A stretch of 64,000 nucleotides of DNA from Eutreptiella sp. 'Long Island Sound 2002' (Eukaryota; Protista; Euglenida). Numbering within the stretch: position 1 is the first letter of the stretch; each line of letters begins with the position of its first letter. The stretch spans positions 71,052,001-71,116,000 of the forward strand of contig OZ038379.1 of NCBI GenBank assembly GCA_964036045.1, read 5' to 3'. A model generated the notes under the pieces. The model had not been told where the DNA came from. It worked only from the letters and a program-made list of their open reading frames with translations, and ran no database searches. The translations under genes were made by a program, and so were the position numbers. Shown piece by piece: positions 20,656 to 62,124 of this stretch.

Positions 20656-22532
20656 TTAGGAGGCCCATAGTGCCCTCTATCGTTTTTTTAAAAAAAAATT
20701 CATGTCGTGCACAGAGCCCAGCCTTTCTGCTGCATAGCCAAGCGTAACGGAGGGGTGGTTCCCAGCCTGGGTGTATGGGGAGGAGGAACGACACGCAGTT
20801 TAGGGGTGCGAAGCAGCAAAAAGGCACCATTTTGGCCCCCTACAGCATGCAAGCGCAGCCACTGTTTTTTCCCATTTTGGAGGTCTGAAATACCGAAAAT
20901 GGACCAGTCGCACCATAAAACTATGTTTCACAGTCTGATATCACAAATGGAGCACGTATTTGGCAACAGCACGTGTTGCGGTTCTTCTAGCACCCGTGGT
21001 ATTGTAACGGCAATGATGACCTTATATGCACCGCCTGTGAAGAAGGTGTCCCCTATCATAACACAGAACAGCACCTGTACAAAAGGAGGGTGCAAAGCAG
21101 CATTTCTGAAAGGCTGGGCTCTGGAGAGGCCAGAAACATGAAATTCACTAAAAACAGGGGTAATAGTACAGGGTTGTACACCAACACAACAGTGCGCAGG
21201 CAAACAGGTAGTAACAGGGCATGAAATAGGGAATTCCTACTGGCTGGGCTCTGCAGAGCCCAGCTCGATACAAACATCATACAGCACCCATGAATTACGC
21301 TATTCATAAACAAGCCAGACCACCAGTGTAGCAATGGTTACAATAGGCATCGGACTATATGCCCCCCCCCCGCCCCCCCCCGAAAAAATTTTCAGTCCAA
21401 TAAGCGACAGACCACCAGAGCACTAGTCATACACAAGGCATGGAAGCTGTACACACTAGTTGACGAGTCTAAGGCACGAACACACACAAAACAAGGCAGA
21501 GAAGTTGTAAAAACCTTTATGTGCACTGTAGGAGGTCCGCCAGAACAAAAAAATTGGATGTTGTACTGACTATAGATTGATGTGTCCCCATATGTGGTTC
21601 AGAAGCACGTACTAACACCTGGCCACACAAAGACTATTCCCCCTTCTGAATCCCGAGCAAATGTTGAACTATCAATAAATGGTTGACACCAACAAAAACT
21701 AGCCACAAATCGCACGAAAAAATTAAGCATCGCACAGTAGGCTGTGTCAAAGCACTGTCCAACATACGCACTGTCAACCGCTGGAGAAATGAAAAGACAT
21801 AGGCCCAATAGATCAATGCAATTGAGCATACATGACAGCGCGGAATAAAACGTGGCCCAGCGATAAAAAGCAAACATGTGCCCAAACTACTAACTTGACA
21901 CTGGACTCTGGGCATACTTGGTAAACTCGAAATGACAGACACGTTCATCTGAGCTCTGCAGGGCCCAGGAACAGGCAACAGAACATGTCACGACCAAATC
22001 AGGGGTACAAATGGCATCTGGACTTTGCACCGCATTGACTGGTAAAACAAATAGCAAGAATTAAAAAATCTGGGGCTCATAGACACAAACCTAGCACCGT
22101 GTATGCACCAAAATTGTGAACAAACTCCACAGTTGGCACACTGTGTCAACGAGGGACTTACCAAAATAAATGCCATAGCACAATGTTGTCCTGATACAAC
22201 CAAATTCACACAGGGACAGTACTGCATTGTTGAGATGAAAGCAACACTGGGTACCACCACGAGGCATGCAAATTGGCCTAAAACAGCATGATGGGCTCTG
22301 CAGAGCCCAGCTCAGTGCAAATTAAAAAAATGACCGTCAAATTCAGCCACAAACACGTACAACGTCAAACAGGCACATCATTCACTGTCCCACAGCCAAT
22401 TGGGACTGCACAGGACAGGCCCAGTCACATCAGGCGCTCACAAAACCAGCACAGTAACACGGTAGCGTCTGTGGTTGTATGTCCATTATGGTCCAGCGAC
22501 AGTCATGATCCAGCGGTATATGGGGCCTCCCG

Positions 22533-25337
22533 TCACTTGCCGTTGCTCTTGCCGTTGCTCTTGGACAAGCCAACCGGGACACCACGTTGCAGGGCGGCCT
22601 GCAGGCCCTCAATTGCCCTTTTTTTCTGCGATGGGGACGCCCCAGCGGCTGCCGTTACCAGCTTATCCTCCTCTTCTGTCCTCTTGCGATTTGCTCGCTC
22701 GTCCTCTTTCGCCTTTTTCTCCTTCCCCTTCTCTTCCTTTTTACGTTGCTTCTCCCGTGCCTCCTCTTGCTTCCGCAACTCGCGCTCAGCCTTCCCCTGC
22801 TCCTTCTGCCGCTGTTTATCGGTGTTTCTCCCCTTCCGCTTGGGAGTTTGCGGATCCGGCACCTCATCAACTTATGACTCACTCGTGTCCGCGTCTGCTG
22901 CCTGGTCAGGGGACTCCTGCTGGAACAGCGGCTGCCCGGTGCTTGCCCAGTGCATGACACTCCGCCACTCAACATCCTCCTCCGTGTCCCCTTTCCGGAC
23001 GCTCGTCTTCAGCAGGTTCACCACATTAGCTGCATTGTAGGGACCATCACATAGTACACCCCGTGCGCAATTCAACGGGACAGTCAAATGAATACAGCCC
23101 AGACTGATCATGTCAGGGCGGCGGCCATAGTACAGTGCCCACAGGCAGCGGGATGCATCACCATCCATGTGCGTGTCGTCCGAGTCGTCGTTGGGGTCCT
23201 CCAGCAAATTCACCAATCACCACAAAATAGCCAGACCCAGCCGCAGACCTTCAGTTAACGACTTTTGTGTGAGGAAGTGCGGCACCGCAGAGCCCAGCCC
23301 ATGGGTCTTCACAAGCAACAAAGTTGACTGCTCGAACAAATACGGCTCTTCTAGGCGCCCCACGTGGTACACAGCCATTCGCAAGGCCGTTGGGTACAAA
23401 TCTTCCAATTGCGACCGCAAGTGTTGTTCCACGGCGACCAAATCCCCATGGTGTCCATGAAAGGCGCCAAGTACCCCTTGAGACAGCACACGCACGATCT
23501 GCACACCAGGGATCCACCCTCCACGCCGCGAGACTTCAACAATGACGAGATTGTACTTCACCATTTGGATCTCATTTGGCACTGCGGTCACCGATCCATC
23601 GTACGCCCAAATTTCTCCGGATTCTGACCCCTTGCAAACATTGACCTTTGCCACCTCGCCACCAGACACCTGAACAGCTGGGTTCAACACTGGTCTCACA
23701 AGCAGTCTGCGATGTGCTTCAACATCTTCTCGAGCGCTGACCCACAGACCTGCCTTCAACAGCGCCTGGAGCGGTGGCCAGGGCGTGCTCTCGCTGTACT
23801 CCCAGCTCCCTTGCCATGCACCAAGATTTGCCAGACGGTGACTAAACTTCTTTGAGATGCGAGCCACTTCTTTGTGCCTGTGTGTACAGCAGCCATAGAG
23901 GAGGGCAGGAGGGCAGCGATCCACCAAGTCACAACGATCTGCCAAAGCGTAAATTTGCAGTTTGTTCGATCCTGGGCTCTGCAGAGCCCAGTACTGTCAA
24001 ATTGGTAATATGAAGGCTGAAATTGGTCACTGTGGTTCATTTGGGCTCTGCAGAGCCCAGCATGACTAAATTGGCAACTGAAGGGGGTGTCCCGGGGGGG
24101 GGGGGGTCGTGGAACATCATTAGGCATGGCCGCAGCGGTCGACAGCATCAACGTCACGGAAGCTTCAACGGTTGCAGTGTCTCTGTACATGCAGTCAATT
24201 GGCATCCCAGGGGATCCTGGGCTCTGCAGGGCCCAGAACTCTCAAGATGGCAATATGGCGTTTGAAATTGGTGAATGTTCCGCAAGTTCATTCCTGATTA
24301 CCGGTGCACTCTTGCCTAATGATGTCCAAGCCCCCCCCCCCCCCCCTCGAGACACCCCCTAATTCACCATTTTGGTCATGCTAGGCTCTGCAGAGCCCAG
24401 GTGGAGGACAGTTCGAACAATCCAACAGATCCAGCGTCTCTGTACATGCAGTCAATTGGCATCCCAGGAGATCCTGGGCTCTGCAGAGCCCAGAACTCTC
24501 AAGATGATAATATGGCGTCTGAAATTGGTCAATGTCCTCCACCTGGCCTTTGCAGAGCCTGGCATGACCAAAATGGTGAATGAGGGGGTGTCCCGGGGGG
24601 GGGGGGGGGCTTGGACATCATCGGGCTAGGTTGCACCAGTCATCAGGAGTGAAGTTGCGGAAGCTCCAACATTCCAACAGGCATAGCGTCTTTGTAGATC
24701 CTGTCAATTGGCATCCCAGGGGATCCTGCGCTCTGCAGAGCCCAGCAGACCCAAACTGTCACACTGAAATCGGTCATTACACTTCATCCAGGCTCCCTGT
24801 CGCAGCGGCCCATTCACAACAACACAGAGCTTCTGGAAGCCCGGTACTGTACTCTTCGGCGAGGCCATGTAGTTGCATACGCGCCAGAAATTGTCGGGTT
24901 GCATTCTAGTAAAGCATCGCACTGTATAAAGGGCAATCACCTGCTTGCGTTCCACCATCTTGCCGAGTGCGTCCGCGAAGGTGGCACCACAGGTCAAGGC
25001 CATATGGGCAGCTGGCCTCATTTGCTTGACGATTGTCTCCGTGTCGCTGGATTTTGCAGTCAGCCCCGCCTCCACGATTGCCTCACACATCAAGGTGACA
25101 ACGGTCTTCTTACATTGTGTGTCCTCAGCCGCCAGTTGTAGGAAATTGTTCAACAGTTGGGGTACATTGCTCTCACGTCCACTGTGCTGCGGCCTATTGT
25201 GTTGTCTAGCCAGCTTTCGCCTGATCTCGACGGATGTATCAAACTTCATGATGCGCACGTCAAAGTTAGTCATCCAGTCCTCGACCTCGCCAATCCTTGC
25301 TGTAACATCCTTGCAAATTTCATCACACGCCGCAAAG
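22533..25337 (-). pseudogene. Degenerate two-exon ORF, candidate RAG1/Transib-type DDE transposase
   Basis: Exon ...GAWMK joins YRCDLVDRC... across a phase-1 GT-AG intron. IWAYDGS followed by VLGAFHGHHGDLVAVEQHLRSQLEDL resembles the D1 region; later motifs are not cleanly recoverable. Ends in a Lys/Glu-rich tail. Confidence 0.4.
23939..24780 (-). other. Predicted 842-bp GT-AG intron of element C containing 7 palindrome copies
   Basis: Donor AAG T|gtaatg at 24780 and acceptor ctttggcag|AT at 23939; splicing gives TAT and joins two long ORFs in frame. Confidence 0.6.
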
Positions 25338-35585: not shown

Positions 35586-38500
35586 ACTTGCATAGCCGCG
35601 GCACTCCAAGCTAACGTTGCCCTTCGCGTTGGCGTTGTCATTGCCCTTTGCCATCCTACCCTTTGTGACCGTCTGGGCTACCATGCAGTCAACGCCTAGG
35701 ATCGGTTGGAAAAAATTGCGGACAATGACCGCCGCGGAGTTGCCAGTGGCAGCCGACAGCGCATCCCTCATACCGGAATTACCACAAATAGTTACTCGCA
35801 GCACCCCGTGCAACCCTGGGTCCGGAATGCGATATTTGGCTGGGATGTGTCTATATATGGCTCCCATGGGGAGCACAACCTCCAACCACCCGTCAATGGT
35901 GGCTTCCCTGCCGAAGTTGGCAAGGCGGCCTCCCCTATTGCGGTCGCAAACCCAACACACCATGGCCTGTGAGGCCTCGGCTTAAAATTTTTTTACAATT
36001 GGCCATTAAAATTTGTGCCTTGGCATCGGCATAGCGGAAAAAGAGTGTTTCCCGGTCAGCACCGGAAGTATCTCAGAAGACAACATTACTAGCATCCCAC
36101 AATTGTTGGTCGAAGTCAACCTCTTGAGCAGCCGCGTACAAGGTCGCCCACTCCTCACTACCGCCCAGTAGCCACCAGCTTGCTAGTTGATTGGTTCCCT
36201 CAAGGGTGCAATGTACGTACGAAGCCTCGTGCCGCGACGTGCCTTCCACTGCTAGTGGCATCCAATGCATCCTTGGATTGCCTGGTTGTTGGACGTGGGC
36301 CGGCTCAACCAGTCGGCGGCGCCACACGTGTTGCAACCGCGCCAGTAACGTGCACAAGGCTCCGTATAGCTCTGTGTCATCCCCCGTCTTGGCTACAAAC
36401 CCCTGCGATGCGGGCTTTGCAAGCTGCTGCATGGTGACCCACACGTCCTCCCATGGTACGCCCTCGAGTAGATGGGGTGTGAGGTACTGCGCCTCTGTGC
36501 TGGACAGGTGCAACGACCGGATGCGCCACACCGCAGCGACGGTCTTCTCCCACATGGATGGTGCGGTGGGCAGAGCACCACTCCCCCCCCCGGTTTACCG
36601 GCGTGAGGACAATCTGGCCCGTGTCCGGGAGGTGCTTCAGTAGATACTCGGCTCCTAGTTCCCCAGAGACGACGAGAGACACTGGACGACGTGCAAAGAG
36701 TGTCAAGACCAACAGAGTCACCTCTTCACAAATGGTGTCCACACCACATTGATCCCTCAAGCTTCAAACTGCCATTGTTGTCCCATTTTTACTTGTTATC
36801 GAAAAAATGGGATGCCGTCCTTTCCGTCGCGCACTAAACCATTGTGTTGTCCCCCCAACGAGTTGCTCGGGAAACAAACGTGTTTCCCAAAGGCTGAGAG
36901 GCACCGCACGCCCGGAGATGGTCCCGGACCCGCTCTGCCGCCGTTTCCTGCCGCTCCTTCGCCGTTGCCTGCCGCTCCGCCTCCTGCGTCCGCTGCTCTG
37001 CCTCCAGGAGCTTGCCTTGCAAGCGGAGGACCTCCCCCTCCGCCACCACCGCCCATTTCTGCCACTCGGGCATGGCCCCCGCCTGCGCCGCCGCCCAAGC
37101 GTCCACCTCCGCAGCGGCCTGCGTTGCCAACAAGGGGCTTTGCAGCCGAGGGCTGGTCACCTAACTTGGCGGAAAGTTTGGGGGCCTTGCGGGGCCGGCC
37201 CACCTTGGACCCGCCGCTCTTGGAGCTCCGCATCGAGGAGGCATCGTCCTCCTGCTCCCCACGCCCCCCTCCTCCGCTTCCAGGTCCACCACTCCCCCCG
37301 CCTCCCCCAAATGCTTGCGGTGCCCCTCTTTTGCCCGCGTGAACATTTGGAGCCAAGCATAGCTCATGTGCTCGTCCGCTCGGTGCCCCCATCCCCTCAC
37401 CCCCGTCACCGCCAACGCTGTCAACTGCCTCAGCTGCCCCTCCAGCACCCCCGCCCTACCCTTCACCCAACAACCCATTCTCCAATGCCCTCCACGCAGC
37501 CGGTATGCGTAGAGGGCAATAATTGTCTCCCCCTCCTTCTAACCTCCCCCGGGGTTGGGGAACGTGATGGCACAAGGGAAGGACATTTTGAGGGGTGGCT
37601 CCCGCGCCCCATCCTGTGTCTCGACCTCGACCTCCCGGGTCGTCGCCACGAACCCCTCCCTTGCCTGCTTCCGTCCAGGGAGGTCGAGCTTGCATGCGAA
37701 CGGGGGCTGGGACCCTACCATGGAGAGGGAGCTGATGGGGGGGGGGGGGTCGGCGGGGTAGGCCGTGGCCCCCGTCCCCGCCACGGGGTGTGCGACGACC
37801 ACGGGGTTGGAGGCGCGGGGTGCAGGGGGGGGCTGCGGAAGTGGCCGCCGTGGGGTCTGCGGGAGTGGCGCCGGCCGAACTCGACGGCACGTTGAGGGTC
37901 ACGTGGCGGACTGTGCCCGACTGTGCAGGAGTATCAGTGTGCCCGGCCGGGCGGAATCGCTTGCGCGCATGCATGGCCGCACGGGGGTCCGGCAGCCAGT
38001 AGCGCCATTGCTCTTGAGAGTGAAATGAAAGGGAACAATGTACCTATTCATGCCAAATTTGCGCGAACTTGGCGCGAAATTCGTGAATCTGCATGCCTGG
38101 CCGAATCTGAAGCATTTGCGAATGCGCAGCACAATGTCGCGAACTTCAGGCAAACTTCGCGCGAATACGGGGTAGAAGACAATGCATACCTCACATTCAC
38201 ACGGTTAGGTCAACGCCCAGGTCCCTTTCTTGGACTCCTTTGCCCGCTTCCACGGCGGCTCATCGTGGAGCGGCTGCCAGGCGGGTGCAAGGCGTGTGGG
38301 GGGCACTATAGCCTTAAGTGCCCACGTCACCTCCACGTCGCCGTCCGTTGAATCCCCCTTCATGACCTTCATCTCGTGCGCCCCATTCCAGATCAAGATG
38401 TCCCCCGCGTGCACGATGGCGGGGGAGATTCCGTGGGCGGAGAGGGAGGAACAGGGGGTGGTGTGTGCACACGGGGGCCCTAGCTCCACCTCGGGGGGGG

Positions 38501-53200: not shown

Positions 53201-54202
53201 CAAGAGTAGGTGGCCTTTGCCCATCGCTATGCTACACTCACGTAACATTCCTAGATTTGCCCCGGACAGCCAACATGTCCGCCATGCATATATATACATC
53301 TTGGCAAAATTGTCCCACCGCAGCCTACAAACGTCCCCCCATGGTCTCCCCCCCACTCGCTCGTTGTTCATTCCCCTCTCTTCAAGGCACGCGGCAATGA
53401 GTGCCTCCCACCTCGGGGTGCGCATGAATGGCACAGCCGCGGCAGACTGCAACCTACCGTTGCCCTTCGCGTTGGCGCTGTCGTTGCCCTTTGCCATCCT
53501 ACCCTTTGTTGCCGTCTTGGCTTCCATGCCGGCAACATCTAGGATCGGTTGGAAAAATTGCGGACAATGACCGCCGCGGAGTTGCCAATGGCAGCTGACA
53601 CCGCATCCCTCATGCCGGAAATACCACAAATAGTTACCGGCGGCACCCCGTGCAACCCTGGGTCCGGAATGCGACGTTTGGCTGGGATGTGTCTATATAT
53701 GGCTCCCATGGGGAGCACAACCTCCCACCACCCGTCAATGGTGGGTTCCAAGCCGAAATTGGCAAGGCAGCCTGCCCGATTGCGGTCGCGAACCCAACAC
53801 ACCATGGCCTGCGAAGCCTCGGCTTTAAAAATTTTACAATTGGCCATTAAAATTTGTGCCTTGGCATCGGCATAGAGGAAAAAGAGTGTTTCCTGGTCAG
53901 CACCGGAAGTATCTTGGAAGACAACCTTACTAGCATCCCACAACTGTTGCTCGAAGTCAACCTCTTGAGCAGCCGCGTACAAGGTCGCCCAACCCTGATA
54001 CACGCTAGAAGTCCCAATCTTGATCTAGCCTAGAACGCTCTAGCTAGAACGTTCTAGCCTAGATTAGATCAATAATAGAACGATATAATGGCTACAACAT
54101 ATCCCAATTCTTCGTTGCTCCGCCGTGCATGCTTGCTATTGTCCGTAGTGCATTGTTAAATCCTTCCTTCTTTCCCGCTTAGATATTGGGCATTTCTTTG
54201 CA

Positions 54203-56160
54203 ATGAAACGCCCCGCCACTACCCCCCTTGCTCCCTCCTCAACCGGGAAGGATACTTCCCTCTTGTCTAAGGCACTACGTGAGATGAGTGGGGCCTCAAA
54301 CCTCAAGGATGAGCGGGTGGGCCATTACTTGGCCACGTGGGCGCTATCATGCCCCCTAGCACGGCAGCAATTCAACAACGCCATCCAATATGTGAACTCC
54401 GCCACTTCTACCCATACCATGGGTGAGGCATGCAAGGCCGCCGTTGAGGCATACGCCGCCTCCCTACTTCCCCCCACCGGCATGTGTGAACTAGTGCTCA
54501 ACACGAGGGCCCCCAAGGACTGGTGGAGGACCCTCTCGGAGCTCTACACGCTCCGTAAATTGGAGTATCACCGCACCGTCCCTAGTGGCCCCTACTCCCG
54601 TCCAATTTGTGCCAAGCGGGCTTTCAAAGCCCGTTGGAAGGAGTTGGTCGCCCCGGTGCAATTTGATGACCCGGTTGCCACGGTGTTGCCCAAGGCCACC
54701 GGGATCTCATGGCCCTTCGCGTCATGGGTCACATACATCCTCTCCCGGCCGGGCTTGGTGCGGTCAATCAACCGCACCTTCCCGTTGACGTTCATCGTCC
54801 GGGGAGATGGGAGATGCCTACCGCGTGGCCGGCGGCAATTGAACCCAACTCACCATCTCCTTGGCCAACTTCGAGCGCTTGGCCCGCTCCCCGGCGGGCC
54901 TTTGGGTGTTGAGCATGGCCAATTGCGATGACAAGGCCATGGACACCCTTGGGACGTTGCGTAAGAGCTATTGGGAGGTACTCCTCTCACCTAGTGCCTT
55001 TCACTCGTTCTAGTTTTGATCTAGTCGGCATCAAACACCGCTCGCTAGACGCTAGATTGGACTAGACTAGAACAAAATTAACCACCCCCCATGTCTCGTG
55101 TTTAGGTGATTCAAGATATCATCGACACGGGGCTGGTCCAATGGGGGGCCTCCAAGGAGGAGGCAAAGGTGATCCTCGGGGAGGATCAACCGTGGACGCG
55201 ACGGGTGATTGGGGTGTCCACATGACCCCAAGTGGGCTCCATGTTCAATGAGGGGATATGGAATGCCCCAACGAAGACTTGGGAGGGTAGTGCTAACCCG
55301 CGGACCATGGAGCGTGACGAGGCCAACTACACAGCCTTCCTCCTTGGGACGCCATCCTTGCAAGCCGCCGGCTGCAGTACGCAGCCCATTTTGGAATTGC
55401 CACGTGCCTGGGTCGTCTTGTGCATTTTGCACTTGACAATGGCCATGGGCCGCTTGTTGGGGGAGTTTGTCGACCGGGAGGCTAGGTCGGTCACCCCTGC
55501 GCTCCGTCAAGACCTGCAAGTCTTCCTGTCGGAGAGGAGTGCAGGTTGGAGCGTTTATGGGTCAGCATCCCCGGACGGGGAGGAGACGGCCAATTTTTTT
55601 GACGCATGGCCGAATATTGCTAAGTGCCTCGGCATTAGGCCGAGCACGGCTAAGTACAAGGCCATCGCGAACATGTGGGACCTGCTCCAGGCCCTCTATT
55701 GTACATATCAGGGCCCTGACCCATTGTTTTGTGCTGTTGTGGCGCGCGATTTCCGGCGACACTGTACTGTTGGAACAGCATCATGGTATCTACTAAGCCT
55801 TGAGCAGGATGTAGATACCATGTTGCACAACATTAAGCCATTTGGCCTGGCCATGTTCTCCGGTGACATTTCGGAAAGCATTAACCGCTTTCTGAAACAT
55901 GGTCACAACGAGCACATCAACCGGGGGGGGGGGGGGCTGTCGGGTGGAGGGGGTGGACGAGGTGTCGTGTCGTCAGTGGTCGGCCATCCACAGGGAGGCC
56001 AATGGGGAAGCGCAGTGCATGACATGGTTGTTTGCGTACTTTGACGTGTCGTGGGTTGTGCATGGGGGGGCCGCGGTCGCAAGTGCCATGCTCGGGCAGG
56101 GATGCCATGGAGGGAAAGAGGGTCAGGGTCACATGCAGGCTTCCCTGAACCAGAGTATTT
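54203..56160 (+). pseudogene. Element B transposase (two exons; 7-bp duplication frameshift, two stops, poly-G frameshift)
   Basis: TFIVRGDAY (D1) ... SMANCDDKAMDTL ... VILGEDQPWTRRVIG (D2) ... VVLCILHLT ... LAMFSGDISESINRFLK (E). The 3' end is approximate. Confidence 0.72.
54978..55105 (+). other. Predicted 128-bp phase-0 GT-AG intron, CTAG-motif rich
   Basis: TGG GAG|gtactc ... gtgtttag|GTG ATT CAA; removal joins SYWE to VIQDII in frame. Confidence 0.7.
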
Positions 56161-56208
56161 CGCAACAAGATGGCATCGCAAGAGCAGTTGGACGAGCTGG
56201 TGAGGCAG

Positions 56209-56352
56209 GTATATTTCGTGCTGTGCGTTCTAGCGCTGATCTAGGGAATCGTCCTAGTCTTGATCTAGGCACCACGATCGGCCACCAGACTGTCGCTAGA
56301 ACGCCGCCAGAAAAGTTGCCTAGAACGCCGCTAGAACGCTCCTATGCTACAG
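56209..56352 (+). other. Predicted 144-bp phase-0 GT-AG intron with inverted GTTCTAG/CTAGAAC clusters
   Basis: AGG CAG|gtatat ... ctacag|AAT GCA. Confidence 0.7.
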
Positions 56353-57777
56353 AATGCAGCGACCCAGGCGCTGATTGCGCAGATCTTGGAGGCGCAGAGG
56401 CGTGCAGCTCCGGCCGAGGAGGCGGAGCCAAAGGCTGACCAGGCCCCGAAGGGCGACCCACCCCCCCTTGCCAAGCCCAAGTCCAAGCCCAAGCCCCAAC
56501 CCCAAGCACCCCATCCACCATCGCCACCCCCTCCCGCATTGGTCGCCGAGAGGCGGGGGGCGGGAGGGTCCACGAGGAGGAGGAACCGGCGGAGGTGGAG
56601 GAGGCGCGGGGGGAGCTCAAAGGGTTGTTGGATTCCCGCGCCGCCTCCAAAGCGGCCAAGACAAGGGCGGAGACAAAAGTCTCGGCCTGGGAGGCAAAAT
56701 TGGCCAGCCTCCGGGAGGAGGGAGCGGAGGAGGAGAGGATCCGCTGGGGGGAGGCCAACCTTTGCAAGGCGAAGGTGAAGGTGGCCGAGAAGCAGGAGGC
56801 GATCGAGGGGTTCGATAGGGCGGTGAGGCGGAGCGAGAGGGAGTCGGCGGCGGTGGTGGCGAGGGTGAAGGACGAGGAGGTGGACGAGGTGGTGGAGGTG
56901 GACGTGGAGGGGGAGATGGAGGAGGCGATCGTGAAGGACGAGGAGGTGGACGAGGTGGTGGAGGTGGACGTGGAGGGGGAGATGGAGGAGGCGACCGTGA
57001 AGGAGGAGAAAGAGGAGACGAAGGTGGTGGAGGCGGCGCCGGCGGGGGGGGGGGGGTGAGCCAGTGGCTCAGGGGTTTGATGGGGTCGAGGGCTGCGGGG
57101 GCCATCCAGGACCTGCCATGGGACCCGGCAGTCCTGGCTGGCCCCCGCCCCCCTAACATGGGCACCCCCCTCCTACTCGACCCGGAGAGTCCGGTGTGGA
57201 CTCTCCGGTTTTTGTTGGTGCGGGTGCACCACCGGCTGTTGGGGGCGGGGCGGTGGGTATGGGTGGACGGGGGGGCGGGGGGTTGTCCACCTGGACAAGC
57301 CCCTGCGCCTGAGGGTGGTCGAGGGGTCGTGGGGGTGGCAACGTGAGTTGCCTGGGCCAGGGAAGCAATGGGGGGGAGGTGCCCCCCCCCCCCCCCGAAA
57401 GGGGGGTGGAGATGTTTGAGTTGGCGCAAACCAACATCTTCACCCCCGCGCGGAAAAAGGGGGGGGGCACCCACTGGCGATTCGTCGCCCACTGCTGGCA
57501 GGGGCTGTGCTTGGGGGGGGTGGAGTGGGTGGGGAAGGCCTGGGTCTGGACGCCGACCTGGTCGGCGCTATTGGACTTGGGGAATTTCAACCCCGAGGCG
57601 GCGAACCGGGGGGTGTATGCCGGGGTGGTGCACGGCATAGCCTCCCGGCCCAAGTCCAAGCCCAAGCCCGCCGCAGCCCCCGCTAGGGGCCCTGCGCAGC
57701 CGCACCCCCCCAACCCCGCGGACGCCTTTGCCAAGGCAGTGGGGGCCATCTCCCCCGCCCTGGACCGCCAAGGCACG

Positions 57778-57932
57778 GTATGTTGATTGCGTTCTAGCGG
57801 TGATCTGACGAACCGTTCTAGCGTTGATCTAGCCACCGCCGTGCCGCCGCCGCTAGAACGTCGCTAGAACACCGCTAGAATAGTTGCCTAGAACGCCGCT
57901 AGAACACACCTGCATGTTGTTTTTGTCTTCAG
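57778..57932 (+). other. Predicted 155-bp GT-AG intron with inverted GTTCTAGCG/CGCTAGAAC clusters
   Basis: GGC ACG|gtatgt ... ttttgtcttcag|GTT GTC; has a clear polypyrimidine tract. Confidence 0.7.
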
Positions 57933-60900
57933 GTTGTCAGCATGTAGACGTGTGGAGGCGACCCCCGCGGGGTGCGCGTGGAGAGGCGCGCTGGTGGAGG
58001 GCGGATGCGCCTCGTGGGGGTCACCGAGTTGAGCCGGATCTTGGGGACGAACCCCAATTTGGCCCTCTCGGTGCTGGAGGGTTTGGGTAAGTGGGAAGCG
58101 GGCAGGAGTGCGGGGGGCATGGACCCGCAGCGCAAGGGTTGGGGGAGGTTGGAGGACCGGGGGGGACGACATGAGCAGCAGAAGCAGCAGCAGCAGCAGC
58201 AGCAGCACCAGCAGCGGGGAGAAGACACCCCCCCGCAAGGCCACCAAACCCCCCCCCAAGGCCCCCAAGAAAAGACCCCGCCCCCGCCACTTCGAGAGTA
58301 GTGACGAAGAGGCGCCCCCCCCCAAGGGCAGCAGGGCAAGCACAAGCCCAAGGCCAAGCCGCAGGCCAAGGGCAAGGGCAAAGCCACGCCCCCCCACCCA
58401 ACCCCAAGCCCCCCCCTTGCAAGAAAGGGACCGGGACCCCTATGGGAATGTGCCGGGTGTGGGGGACATCCGGTATGTCCCTTGGGCGGAGGGGGGCAAT
58501 GGGGGGACCCTCAGCCAAGTGACGGTGTTGGGGGATTGGGATGAGGAGTTGGACCCGGGGGAGTGGTGGGTGGTGCCGCAGGGGTCCAATGGGGAGGGGG
58601 AGGGGGGGAAGAAGGGGAACAAGGGGAAGAAGAGGAGGCGGGAGAAAGAGGGGGGCACCTTCCGGGTGGCGGGGGAGCTCCTCTTCCTCACCCGGGAGGA
58701 GGCGGAGGCCCACCTCCGGGAGGCCTTGGAGGCCGGGGACAACGGGGACGACGGGGATGAAGGGGATGACGAGGGGGACGCGGGTGGTGACAAGGGGGAG
58801 GGGGGTGACAAGGGGGGTGAGGTGGGGGGTGACAAGGGGGCCCGAGAAGGAAGGGGACACGGGGGGTGGGGGTGAGAAGGGGGGTGCCGGGAGCAAGGAT
58901 GAGCCCCGGCAACCCCCCACCACATAGGAGGGGTAACCTGCGTGTCGCGACTCGCGAATGGGGGCCAGGGGGGGCAAGGGGGCGAATCGGGCTAACCGGG
59001 CTAATCGGGCTAACCCACCACCAAGTGACCCGGCGCCGGCCCGCCACGTGACCTTCCAAGTGACCTATGGGGTGCGGTGGGGGGCTGACCGGGCTAACCG
59101 GGGGGTTGGGGGGGGGGGACCCGGCGCTCCGTGAGTCGGGTCCAGCATCGGGACCCTGTGATTGGCCACGGCTGGCCATGGTAGCCGGGGCACCTTCTCT
59201 TTAAGAAGTGGCGGAGCATTCATATATATCGTTCTAGCGGCGTTCTAGCGAACCGTTCTAGCGGTGTTGTAGCGACGCTCGCTAGAACGTCGCTAGAACG
59301 CCGCTAGAACGAAAAAATTTTGGACTCCAAAATCAGGTGAAAACAGTGAAGTTTAAAAAAAAAAGTATGGGCCCCCGAGTATGGATAGGGTGGTCCAGGT
59401 TAGAAACCTCACCCCCCCCCCCCCCCTGCGGGGGGGTATCCCCCTCTTTTTTTCGTTCTAGCCGCTCTAGCCGGTTCTAGGCTAGAACGAGATTGGGTAT
59501 TCTAGCGTGTACCAAGGGCACTCCTCACTACCCCCCAGTAGCCACCAGCTTGCTAGTTCATCGGGGCTATTGGTTCCCCCGAGGGTGCAATGCACGTACG
59601 AAGCCTCGTGCCGCGACGTGCCGTCCACTGCTAGTGGCATCCAATGCAGCCTTGGATTGTCCGTTTGTTGGACGTGGGCCGGCTCAACCGGTCGGCAACG
59701 GTACAGGTGTTGCAACCGCGCAAGTAACGGGCAAAAGGCTCCGTAAAGCTCCATGTTATCCCCCGTCTTGGCTACAAACCCCTCCGATGCGGGCTTTGCA
59801 AGCTGCTGCATGGTGACCCTCACGTCCTCCCAGGGTACCCCCTCAACTAGATGAGGTGTGAGGTATTGCGCCTCTGTCTTGGACAGGTGCAGCGACCGGA
59901 TGCACCACACCGCGGCGACGGTCTTCTCCCAAATGGATGGTGCGGTGGGCAGATCACCACTCCCCCCCCCCGTCTACCGGCGTGAGGACAATCTGGCCCG
60001 TGTCCAGGAGGTGCTTCACCAGATACTCCGGTCCTAGTTCCCCCGAGACAACGTCCTGCAATGTCCTCAAGCGGCAAGCCCGGTGCTGCCTGGACTTGAT
60101 ATGGACAAAGGCCTTCTTCCCCTTGTCGCCAACCCCACGTCCCATGACAAAAAACACTGAGAATAGCCAATAAGCAATGCATGTCAATTTGCAATGTCGA
60201 GAAAGTGAGAGAAAGTCAACCCCATTGGCAAACACCGCACCCCAAAAAATTTGTACAAGCACCCCATGCGTTGGGAACCAGCAATAGACACAAATACTGT
60301 ACTAATTCGCGCGAATTTGGCGCGAAGTTCGCGCGAAGTTAGCATAAACTTTAGGACAGTGGTCAGCTGAGTTGTTCGCGCGTTTGCATGCAATCGCGCG
60401 AAGTCCGAAATTCGTGGCACGATCAGGACAGTGGTCAGCGATGTTGTAAATTACAATGGTTAAAGAGGCCGTTCGTAGGGCGACACTACGGGGACCCAGT
60501 GCCTGTGGAGGTCCCAAACCCATGGGCTGCGGAGGGCTTGGGGGGGCTGAGGGGGGAGCTTGAAGGCTGGGTTAGTTGCGGCCTCCACCACAGCGTCCCC
60601 CAGGTACCGCCTCTCGACATCGTCATGGCTGTCCAAGGCACCTTGAAACCCAGGCACCACCGATTGCAAGGTCAGCCCGTTCCTCTACGAAAGCAGCAGG
60701 CGCGCGGTGGCGGCCATTGCTGAGAACTCCCCCTTCGCCTTCGTTGCCTGGGCCTTCGGGGCCTGGCTCCCCGCCATAAGGTACCTCGTACCGCCCCCCC
60801 CCCCCGCCCCTGCCCCCCCCCCCCTTCCGTCTGCTCTTCCTGCTGCTGCCCCTACGTGCCCGCCTTCGGCTTGGTTTTGCAGGCCTGCGCCTGGAGATGG

Positions 60901-61956: not shown

Positions 61957-62124
61957 CTCTTGAGAATGAAATGAAAGGGAATAGTATAACTTCTCATGCC
62001 AAATTCGCGCGAACTTTGCGCGAAATTCGTGCACCTGCATGCCTGACCGAATATGAAGCATTTGCGGATGCGCAGCACAATGTCGCGAACTTCGCGCTAA
62101 TACGGGGTAGAGGACGATGCATAC
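61957..62124 (-). other. Predicted 168-bp GT-AG intron of element A with TTCGCGCGAA-type motifs (equivalent at ~38008-38190)
   Basis: TTT GAG|gtatgc ... tctcaagag|CAA TGG; the donor is conserved in both A copies. Confidence 0.55.

Follow-up and report, generated by a model that had tools for sequence, protein, structure and literature searches.

Introns of a Eutreptiella transposon are built around cassettes of the element's own end motif

The stretch analysed here, referred to as the window, comprises 64,000 nucleotides (64 kb) of contig OZ038379.1 from the euglenid alga Eutreptiella sp. 'Long Island Sound 2002'. It contains a transposon of about 5.5 kb, termed element B, which occupies positions 53992-59518 and is flanked by a 2-bp target duplication; all features of B given below lie on the plus strand. 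B has three introns, each constructed around a single copy of a 70-125-bp cassette that is also present next to the element's ends. B is a decayed copy of an abundant cut-and-paste transposon that carries a second gene alongside a transposase for which a modelled relative points to a RAG1/Transib fold.

Borders, genes and transposase of element B

The borders of B were established from an empty site and from further copies of the element. Uninterrupted contigs of the host element skip positions 53990-59518 with a 2-letter overlap. Two full copies elsewhere in the same assembly, L003 (93-94% identical to B) and L005 (82-86% identical), begin and end at the same letters as B. The target duplication reads CA in B (53990-53991 on the left and 59519-59520 on the right), and TA and CT in the other two copies. 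The first-pass annotation had set the ends at 54001 and 59509; the true ends lie 9 nt further out. A TA duplication combined with ends at 54001 and 59509 is ruled out by the empty site and the two other copies.

The left terminal inverted repeat (TIR; 53992-54036), recognised as inverted repeat I2 (51 nt, 82% complementary) and from the alignment of three copies, begins with the terminal 10-mer CCCTGATACA. A copy of the motif described below, CGCTAGAAG, follows directly at 54003-54011. A left subterminal palindrome composed of CTAGAAC, GTTCTAG and GATCTAG units is situated at 54024-54070 (fold z -3.4). On the right, a motif cluster and the right TIR occupy 59453-59518, with the terminal TGTACCAAGGG coming after the last motif copy (59499-59507). 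At both ends of B the outermost motif copy therefore directly abuts the terminal 10-mer.

Where the first-pass annotation had drawn a single gene, the element was found to contain two: intron 1 interrupts the transposase gene, and introns 2 and 3 interrupt a second open reading frame (ORF), ORF2. Transposase exon 1 (54203-54977), taken from the ORF list, encodes the first catalytic Asp region, RGDAY.VAGGNW. In B it is broken by a 7-bp duplication (54802-54815) and a TGA (54840-54842); an intact ortholog of 256 codons is present at L003:6042-6809. Intron 1 (54978-55105; 128 nt, GT-AG, phase 0) contains an in-frame stop, a C-rich pyrimidine tract and a weak hairpin cassette. Transposase exon 2 (55106-56100), for which 275 close and 355 distant homologs were found, encodes the motifs GGDQPW, CILH..MA.GR and D..ES.NR.LK, and contains a TGA (55223-55225) and homopolymer frameshifts.

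ORF2 begins with a mini-exon (56171-56208) consisting of an ATG and 12 codons, which overlaps the tail of the transposase reading frame and has a stop 7 codons upstream in frame. The ATG mini-exon and the intron layout are shared by L005 and by L006, a related element from another sample. Intron 2 (predicted; 56209-56352; 144 nt, GT-AG, phase 0) carries two forward motif units in its 5' arm and four CGCTAGAAC-like units in its 3' arm. The middle exon (56353-57777) would encode coiled-coil, Lys/Pro-rich and acidic stretches; all copies read go out of frame here at G/C runs. Intron 3 (predicted; 57778-57932; 155 nt, GT-AG, phase 0), a paralog of intron 2, has an in-frame TGA as its third codon and a strong hairpin cassette. 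The last exon (57933-58930) is represented by ORFs at 57972-58301 and 58108-58875.

With its 7-bp duplication, the TGA codons at 54840 and 55223 and the frameshifts at G/C runs, the window copy of B is dead. Long G or C runs coincide with frame loss in all copies (55922-55935, 57047-57058, 57384-57396, 59412-59426 and others), and may be either long-read assembly errors or real slippage-prone tracts.

The junction of intron 1 is fixed to the nucleotide. Conceptual splicing of intron 1 in the intact copy L003 yields an ORF of 651 codons, the product of which aligns through the junction, without a gap, to the uninterrupted 434-residue relative P0158. Furthermore, the LW-to-GGD distance comes to 34 residues in P0158 as well as in the spliced forms of B/L003 and L006. 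An intron at the position and phase of intron 1 is also found in L006 and L010, and in L006 a further one is present at the position of intron 2. The splice sites of introns 2 and 3 are kept in copies that differ by ~20% at neutral sites (those of intron 3 in four copies), and the reading frames that flank both introns fit. The earlier proposal of a frame restored in phase 0 proved right for all three introns. The transposase frame itself continues past its conserved part, crosses the ORF2 mini-exon in another frame and ends inside intron 2 (56100-56352; L003:7001-8125; L006:1275-2519), such that retention and removal of intron 2 would give different transposase tails.

In five runs that contain the sequence, the contigs behave like genomic DNA. 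Four runs analysed for joints yielded empty-site and deletion joints, and no splice junctions among those listed. B sequence was absent from three tiny RNA runs. A 1-kb contig from a JGI metagenome (L001; 3300040806, contig Ga0436636_0166420) is 97% identical to the end of exon 1, intron 1 and exon 2. It keeps intron 1, and is thus DNA or unspliced RNA; its degree of identity places the alga or a close relative in that sample. None of the 266 proteins fetched spans a junction, and a protein search with P0158 gave one further match. No copy with an intact ORF2 frame across intron 3 was found among those read.

With Pfam, none of the exons of B, L003, L006 and L011 (ORF2 included) could be assigned to a family. 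A profile of distant relatives produced a weak but colinear match to amphioxus RAG1L (E 1.1). P0158 is 35% identical to the spliced B-family protein, and its AlphaFold (AF2) model has a pTM of 0.81. When this model was searched against the PDB with Foldseek, the 48 best matches were to RAG1, BbRAGL and HzTransib (best E 1.4e-10, TMq 0.63). Judged by this modelled relative, the B transposase is predicted to possess the RAG1/Transib fold. Candidate D, D and E motifs (GD(A/G).P, GGD.PW and ES.N..LK) are conserved, the last being aligned with the E-containing SEGNEAGNK of RAG1L only in the weak profile match (E 1.1).

Members of the RAG1/Transib superfamily usually produce a 5-bp target duplication and have TIRs that begin with a heptamer-like CAC. 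The transposase of B resembles RAG1, Transib and ProtoRAG (PDB 6dbw, 6b40, 6pqx and others) in its predicted catalytic core fold (Foldseek E 1e-10, TM 0.63), and the putative recognition motif of B adjoins the cleavage-site sequence in much the manner of heptamer and nonamer. However, the duplication of the B family is 2 bp in three copies, in keeping with the 2-letter overlap at the empty site, and the ends begin (N)CCCTGGTA, with CAC at about positions 10-12. B also differs in having many motif copies as opposed to one nonamer, in possessing introns, and in carrying a second gene unrelated to RAG2.

A cassette common to the ends and the introns

The 7-mer GTTCTAG/CTAGAAC was counted on both strands of the window. 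There are 25 matches against 3.06 expected (sd 1.95), a number reached by none of 100 shuffles, and 24 of the 25 are inside B. Three lie at the left end (54030, 54044 and 54051), two in intron 1 (55007 and 55067), four in intron 2 (56227, 56296, 56320 and 56331), six in intron 3 (57791-57899), six in the 3' cassette (59231-59304) and three at the right end (59455, 59474 and 59482). The exons of B contain none. The restriction of the motif to the ends (3' cassette included) and the three introns, as first described, was thus confirmed. The 9-mer CGCTAGAAC produces the same map. The described polarity was also recovered with the 9-mer: in introns 2 and 3 and at 59231-59310, the 5' half carries forward GTTCTAGCG copies and the 3' half CGCTAGAAC copies. 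Units in B are spaced 11, 13 and 24 bp apart (repeat family D3), a periodicity of about one helical turn.

Outside B copies, GTTCTAG occurs only 8 times in 113 kb of the same genome. Since the motif is rare everywhere, its depletion from exons, which a motif scan had been proposed to reveal, cannot be shown; the genuine signal is a several-hundred-fold enrichment within ~0.7 kb of non-coding cassettes.

Some variation in the units was observed. In the 5' arms of B (54024-54070, and in introns, e.g. 55020-55026 and 56238-56244), the second half-unit reads GATCTAG. At the corresponding place in intron 1, GTTCTAG is found in L020 and L021, copies of an older subfamily, and the motif is thus drifting within the family. 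A second short repeat, (C)GGGCTAAC(C), is present in ~5 copies in the 3' untranslated part of B (58978-59102) and is absent from the introns.

The cassette consists of two facing arrays of the 9-mer CGCTAGAAC, with units 11 and 13 bp apart. In the 3' subterminal hairpin cassette (59228-59312), recognised as inverted repeat I13 (23 nt, 100% complementary), four GTTCTAGCG units face three CGCTAGAAC units; the number of units differs among copies. Introns 2 and 3 align to one another over nearly their full length, including the GTAT 5' splice site, with 69-80% identity, and are also linked by repeat families D10 and D15 (82-86%). Both align to the 3' cassette, while intron 1 is more distant. Orthologous cassettes compared across copies are 81-94% identical, as opposed to 69-80% for paralogous cassettes within one copy. 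Cassettes therefore group by position and not by copy, from which it follows that gene conversion is slow on this time scale.

Contig depth at the ends of B is 3-8 times that of the middle, and contig joints connect the loops of intron cassettes with the loop of the 3' cassette (56281>59279, 57839>59279 and 55024>59279; runs X1-X3). Many deletion derivatives of the element must therefore exist, and the cassettes are the breakpoints of some of them.

Fold-back had been predicted for introns 2 and 3 and for 59230-59310. The 3' cassette forms an almost perfect hairpin (-69 kcal/mol, z -13.2 relative to shuffles). Intron 3 folds with -58.6 kcal/mol (z -6.5), its stem extending from nt 2 to nt 139 of 155; it starts 1 nt after the 5' splice site and ends ~17 nt before the 3' splice site. 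A stem is present in introns 1 and 2, but each of these folds as a whole no better than its shuffles (z about -1.5). In four copies, 94% of the cells of the intron 3 stem pair. Covariation in this stem, among the same four copies, amounts to one compensatory pair, and 119 of 500 shuffles do as well. A search of Rfam yielded nothing above threshold, only sub-threshold hairpin look-alikes.

Conservation of the motif cores and change across related families

Constraint on the motif cores was assessed by defining core columns in one copy and counting changes in the other. This was done in both directions and the two branch values were summed, a procedure that removes ascertainment bias. Over introns 1-3, L003 and L005 differ by 0.042 in the cores and by 0.206 in other intron columns. 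Over introns 1-2, the respective values are 0.074 and 0.256 for L003-L021, 0.071 and 0.203 for L005-L021, and 0.073 and 0.220 for L020-L021. Fisher p values for these four pairs range from 3e-7 to 1e-2, and dropping CpG sites leaves the result unchanged. Divergence for comparison is 0.17-0.25 at third codon positions and 0.08-0.19 at first and second positions. The divergence of motif cores in introns is thus 3-5 times lower than that of the remaining intron sequence, with the exception of one neutrally decayed copy, L020. Stem positions outside the cores evolve at the neutral rate.

L020 is the copy with the weakest coding constraint; compared with L005, all three of its codon positions differ about equally. 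Its cores and other columns differ by 0.167 and 0.235 relative to L003, and by 0.165 and 0.181 relative to L005. The advantage of the cores is therefore mostly gone where coding constraint is weakest, providing an internal control. Whether the cores behave as selected sequence or as junk thus follows the behaviour of the genes.

Related families possess arrays of a different motif in the same kinds of places. The own end motifs of three of them are CTTTGAACG (L006), CGTAGAACG and TAGCGCGCGCTA (L011), and in each relative the own motif is also the most frequent 8-mer, restricted to stretches that are end-like, intronic or intergenic. L006, the transposase of which is 50% identical, has introns 1 and 2 at the positions and phase of B. 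The 12 copies of its motif CGTTCAAA/TTTGAACG are distributed over introns 1 and 2 and the 5' subterminal region, whose three cassettes are paralogs of each other. L007, the element that carries P0158, has 10 copies of CGTTCTAC/GTAGAACG, located downstream of the transposase stop and in an intron that occupies another position. In L011, a P0158 relative from the same genome as B, the palindrome TAGCGCGCGCTA occurs in each end region, within two GT-AG introns and downstream of both stop codons. Across families the intron motif thus changes together with the end motif, and arrays persist in every intron of families set apart at 35-50% protein identity. T(A/T)GAAC is common to the motifs of B, L006 and L007, which is what drifting DNA-binding specificity would give.

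A telomere-like CCCTAACCCTAACCCT adjoins the motif arrays at the edge of two of the related elements (L006:49-75 and L007:1757-1778). The ends of B start CCCTGG/CCCTTGG, and the telomere-like stretch might either belong to the termini or represent a favoured target.

Repeated motifs were also noted in other elements of the window. Element A has a motif of its own, TTCGCGCGAA, with 12 matches against 1.1 expected (50045, 52723, 60306-60402 and 62004-62100, also 38058-38165). These are clustered near the ends of A with one internal cluster at 60306-60402, the same habit as that of B. In element C the perfect 20-bp palindrome CTGGGCTCTGCAGAGCCCAG recurs at several internal sites as well as in a dense 3' block (21113-21264, 21948, 22292 and 23969-24760). 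Using tblastn and the transposase profile, no relatives of B were detected among elements A, C and E in the window, and the similar habit is therefore not attributable to common descent with B. B itself is inserted in a minus-strand ORF of element A (53539-54003 and 59482-59910, both on the minus strand). Removal of 53990-59518 restores one continuous A frame (..GGSEE-WATLYAAAQ..), and the uninterrupted form is present in contigs of four runs. In a further copy of B (L002:6116-6961), the equivalent of 54290-55130, comprising most of exon 1 and intron 1, is inverted in place; in addition, ~2.6 kb of foreign sequence precede the 3' end of this copy.

Proposed recognition arrays and alternative explanations

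We favour an explanation, to which we assign a probability of about 0.5, in which the introns house arrays of recognition sites for an element-encoded protein and the RNA hairpin is a by-product. The 9-mer CGCTAGAAC would be the recognition site of either the N-terminal part of the transposase or the ORF2 product, and the introns would be places in which extra arrays can be held inside the element without damage to its genes. Such arrays might gather more protein on full-length copies and thereby help to join the distant ends, or might favour full-length copies over deletion derivatives. Alternatively, they might feed back on transcription of the element itself. The ability of the intron RNA to fold back would then follow from the two-fold symmetry of the array; it may aid splicing, but would not be the property that is kept. 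The first-pass annotation had offered three readings of the introns, and internal binding arrays made harmless by splicing is the best supported among them. The motif abuts the terminal 10-mers, its cores are the better conserved part of the introns, and other families have their own end motifs in introns at the same positions.

Subterminal arrays are familiar from plant transposons, namely the 12-bp TnpA motifs of En/Spm and the AAACGG hexamers of Ac. B resembles these elements in having a short element-specific motif repeated in both orientations near both ends, as well as an accessory second gene. The plant motifs are read by an element-encoded protein, and a corresponding protein would be expected in B. 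The arrays of En/Spm and Ac, however, are limited to the ends, whereas in B homologous arrays also fill every intron. Moreover, the B transposase is predicted to be RAG1-like and not of the CACTA or hAT type.

Several points weigh against recognition arrays. That a protein binds the motif, which protein this would be and what its binding would achieve we infer from sequence, and the Pfam search recognised no DNA-binding domain in exon 1 or ORF2. The splicing of introns 2 and 3 as drawn is likewise a prediction, made from their splice sites and flanking frames. The constraint test draws on six B-family copies and depends on the alignment of repetitive sequence. In L010, which has intron 1 at the same place, the intron contains a palindrome that was not matched to the ends of the element, these lying off the contig. 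The 5' untranslated region of B and positions 58931-59227 are without the motif, and it is thus untrue that every free space is filled. Finally, the internal homologous cassettes come at a cost to the element by seeding shorter, non-autonomous deletion derivatives.

The second reading in the first-pass annotation was that end-derived mini-elements became introns. Here, a self-copying subterminal cassette would land in the coding sequence of the element and bring or recruit splice sites, and the match between introns and ends would reflect descent only. As the explanation of the arrays this appears unlikely, although it may account for the origin of some introns. The paralogy of introns 2 and 3 covers nearly all of their length together with the 5' splice site, and both align to the 3' cassette; in L006 the 5' subterminal cassette and two introns are mutually paralogous; and the L007/L011 family, which is without intron 1, has a GT-AG intron elsewhere that is filled with its own motif. 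A source resembling MITEs (miniature inverted-repeat transposable elements) is already suspected for euglenid hairpin introns (PMC11282704). With introners and MITE-derived introns B shares a transposon-derived sequence of inverted symmetry serving as an intron, and a possible route of intron gain (PMC11282704, PMC12130899, bioRxiv 10.1101/2022.06.06.494994). Introners, however, are complete mini-transposons with TIRs and target duplications, present in many copies in host genes (PMC11282704, PMC12130899, bioRxiv 10.1101/2022.06.06.494994). The cassettes of B occupy conserved sites within the genes of the transposon itself, and the intron borders display neither the terminal 10-mer nor a flanking direct repeat, meaning that the transposase could not excise them in the usual way. 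A search of 113 kb of the same genome revealed no free-standing cassette, its single additional cluster being a diverged intron-2 ortholog, and a metagenome scan with the 20-nt double motif returned only 8 unrelated high-GC bacterial contigs. Introns 1 and 2 are at identical position and phase in families with differing motifs, indicating that their contents changed in place and not by new insertions. Descent alone also gives no reason for conservation to be limited to the 7-bp cores. For some of the introns, an introner-like origin is compatible with recognition arrays.

It is quite improbable, in our estimation, that the arrays are kept for a function at the RNA level, whereby the intron hairpin would join the splice sites or give small RNAs that act on the element's ends. 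The stable stem of intron 3, which approaches both splice sites and pairs almost throughout in four copies, would suit such a role, and euglenids do possess conventional/intermediate introns that combine GT-AG borders with stable structure (PMC4770533). Intron 3 clearly conforms to this type (z -6.5), and introns 1 and 2 do so in part (z about -1.5). Further likenesses to euglenid introns are the shared organism group, the foldbacks and a C-rich pyrimidine tract before AG, as reported for conventional introns of E. gracilis (PMC4770533, PMC12501133, PMC11170887). The foldback of B, however, is made of a repeated family-specific motif and not of unique sequence, and the introns are GT-AG with no CAG/CTG code. 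In the nonconventional euglenid code, CAG at +4 to +6 pairs with CTG at -8 to -6 and the borders are non-GT-AG (PMC12501133). Nonconventional introns are ruled out for B, as all three have the form GTA...AG and read CTC, TAT and TGT at +4 to +6; the signature N3-CDG ... CHG-N5-6|R (PMC12501133) is absent. The fold of introns 1 and 2 is no better than that of shuffles, the single compensatory pair in intron 3 is matched by many shuffles, non-core stem positions change at the neutral rate, and Rfam gives no match above threshold. Nor would a pure need for structure give each family its own end motif. Structure-assisted splicing, the third of the original suggestions, consequently found no positive support.

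Very improbable, to our mind, is that the arrays have no function at all and are selfish micro-repeats, spread or homogenised by slippage, gene conversion or template switching in gap repair, that survive where they are harmless. Survivorship alone would account for their confinement to non-coding sequence. The arrays are also prone to recombination, as seen from deletion derivatives joined between cassettes, and the 3' cassette varies in unit number between copies. Conversion is nevertheless slow, given that orthologous cassettes are closer than paralogs of the same copy, and its tracts would take the spacers along, whereas only the cores are conserved. The persistence of arrays in every intron, across families at such protein distances, likewise speaks against their being without function.

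Transposon biology places recognition arrays at the ends of elements, and intron biology regards transposon-derived introns as insertions into host genes. Both meet in B, whose own introns are made of its own end cassette and contain cores conserved like coding sequence. The element adds to the range of its superfamily a transposon of predicted RAG1 fold with 2-bp duplications and multi-copy 'nonamer-like' sites. If a protein binds the arrays, introns would be carriers of cis-acting DNA sites for a mobile element, and autonomous copies would have a new way to differ from deletion derivatives. B further provides research on euglenid introns with young, datable, structured GT-AG introns of known source sequence, and is relevant to the still unsettled origin of euglenid hairpin introns. 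A broader generalisation, which we hold to be doubtful, is that euglenid RAG1-like transposons store recognition arrays in their own introns, where these co-evolve with the transposase and the ends, and that new structured introns arise when the same cassettes are copied into coding sequence. If true, B would represent a concrete and still-active case of euglenid hairpin introns arising from transposon ends.

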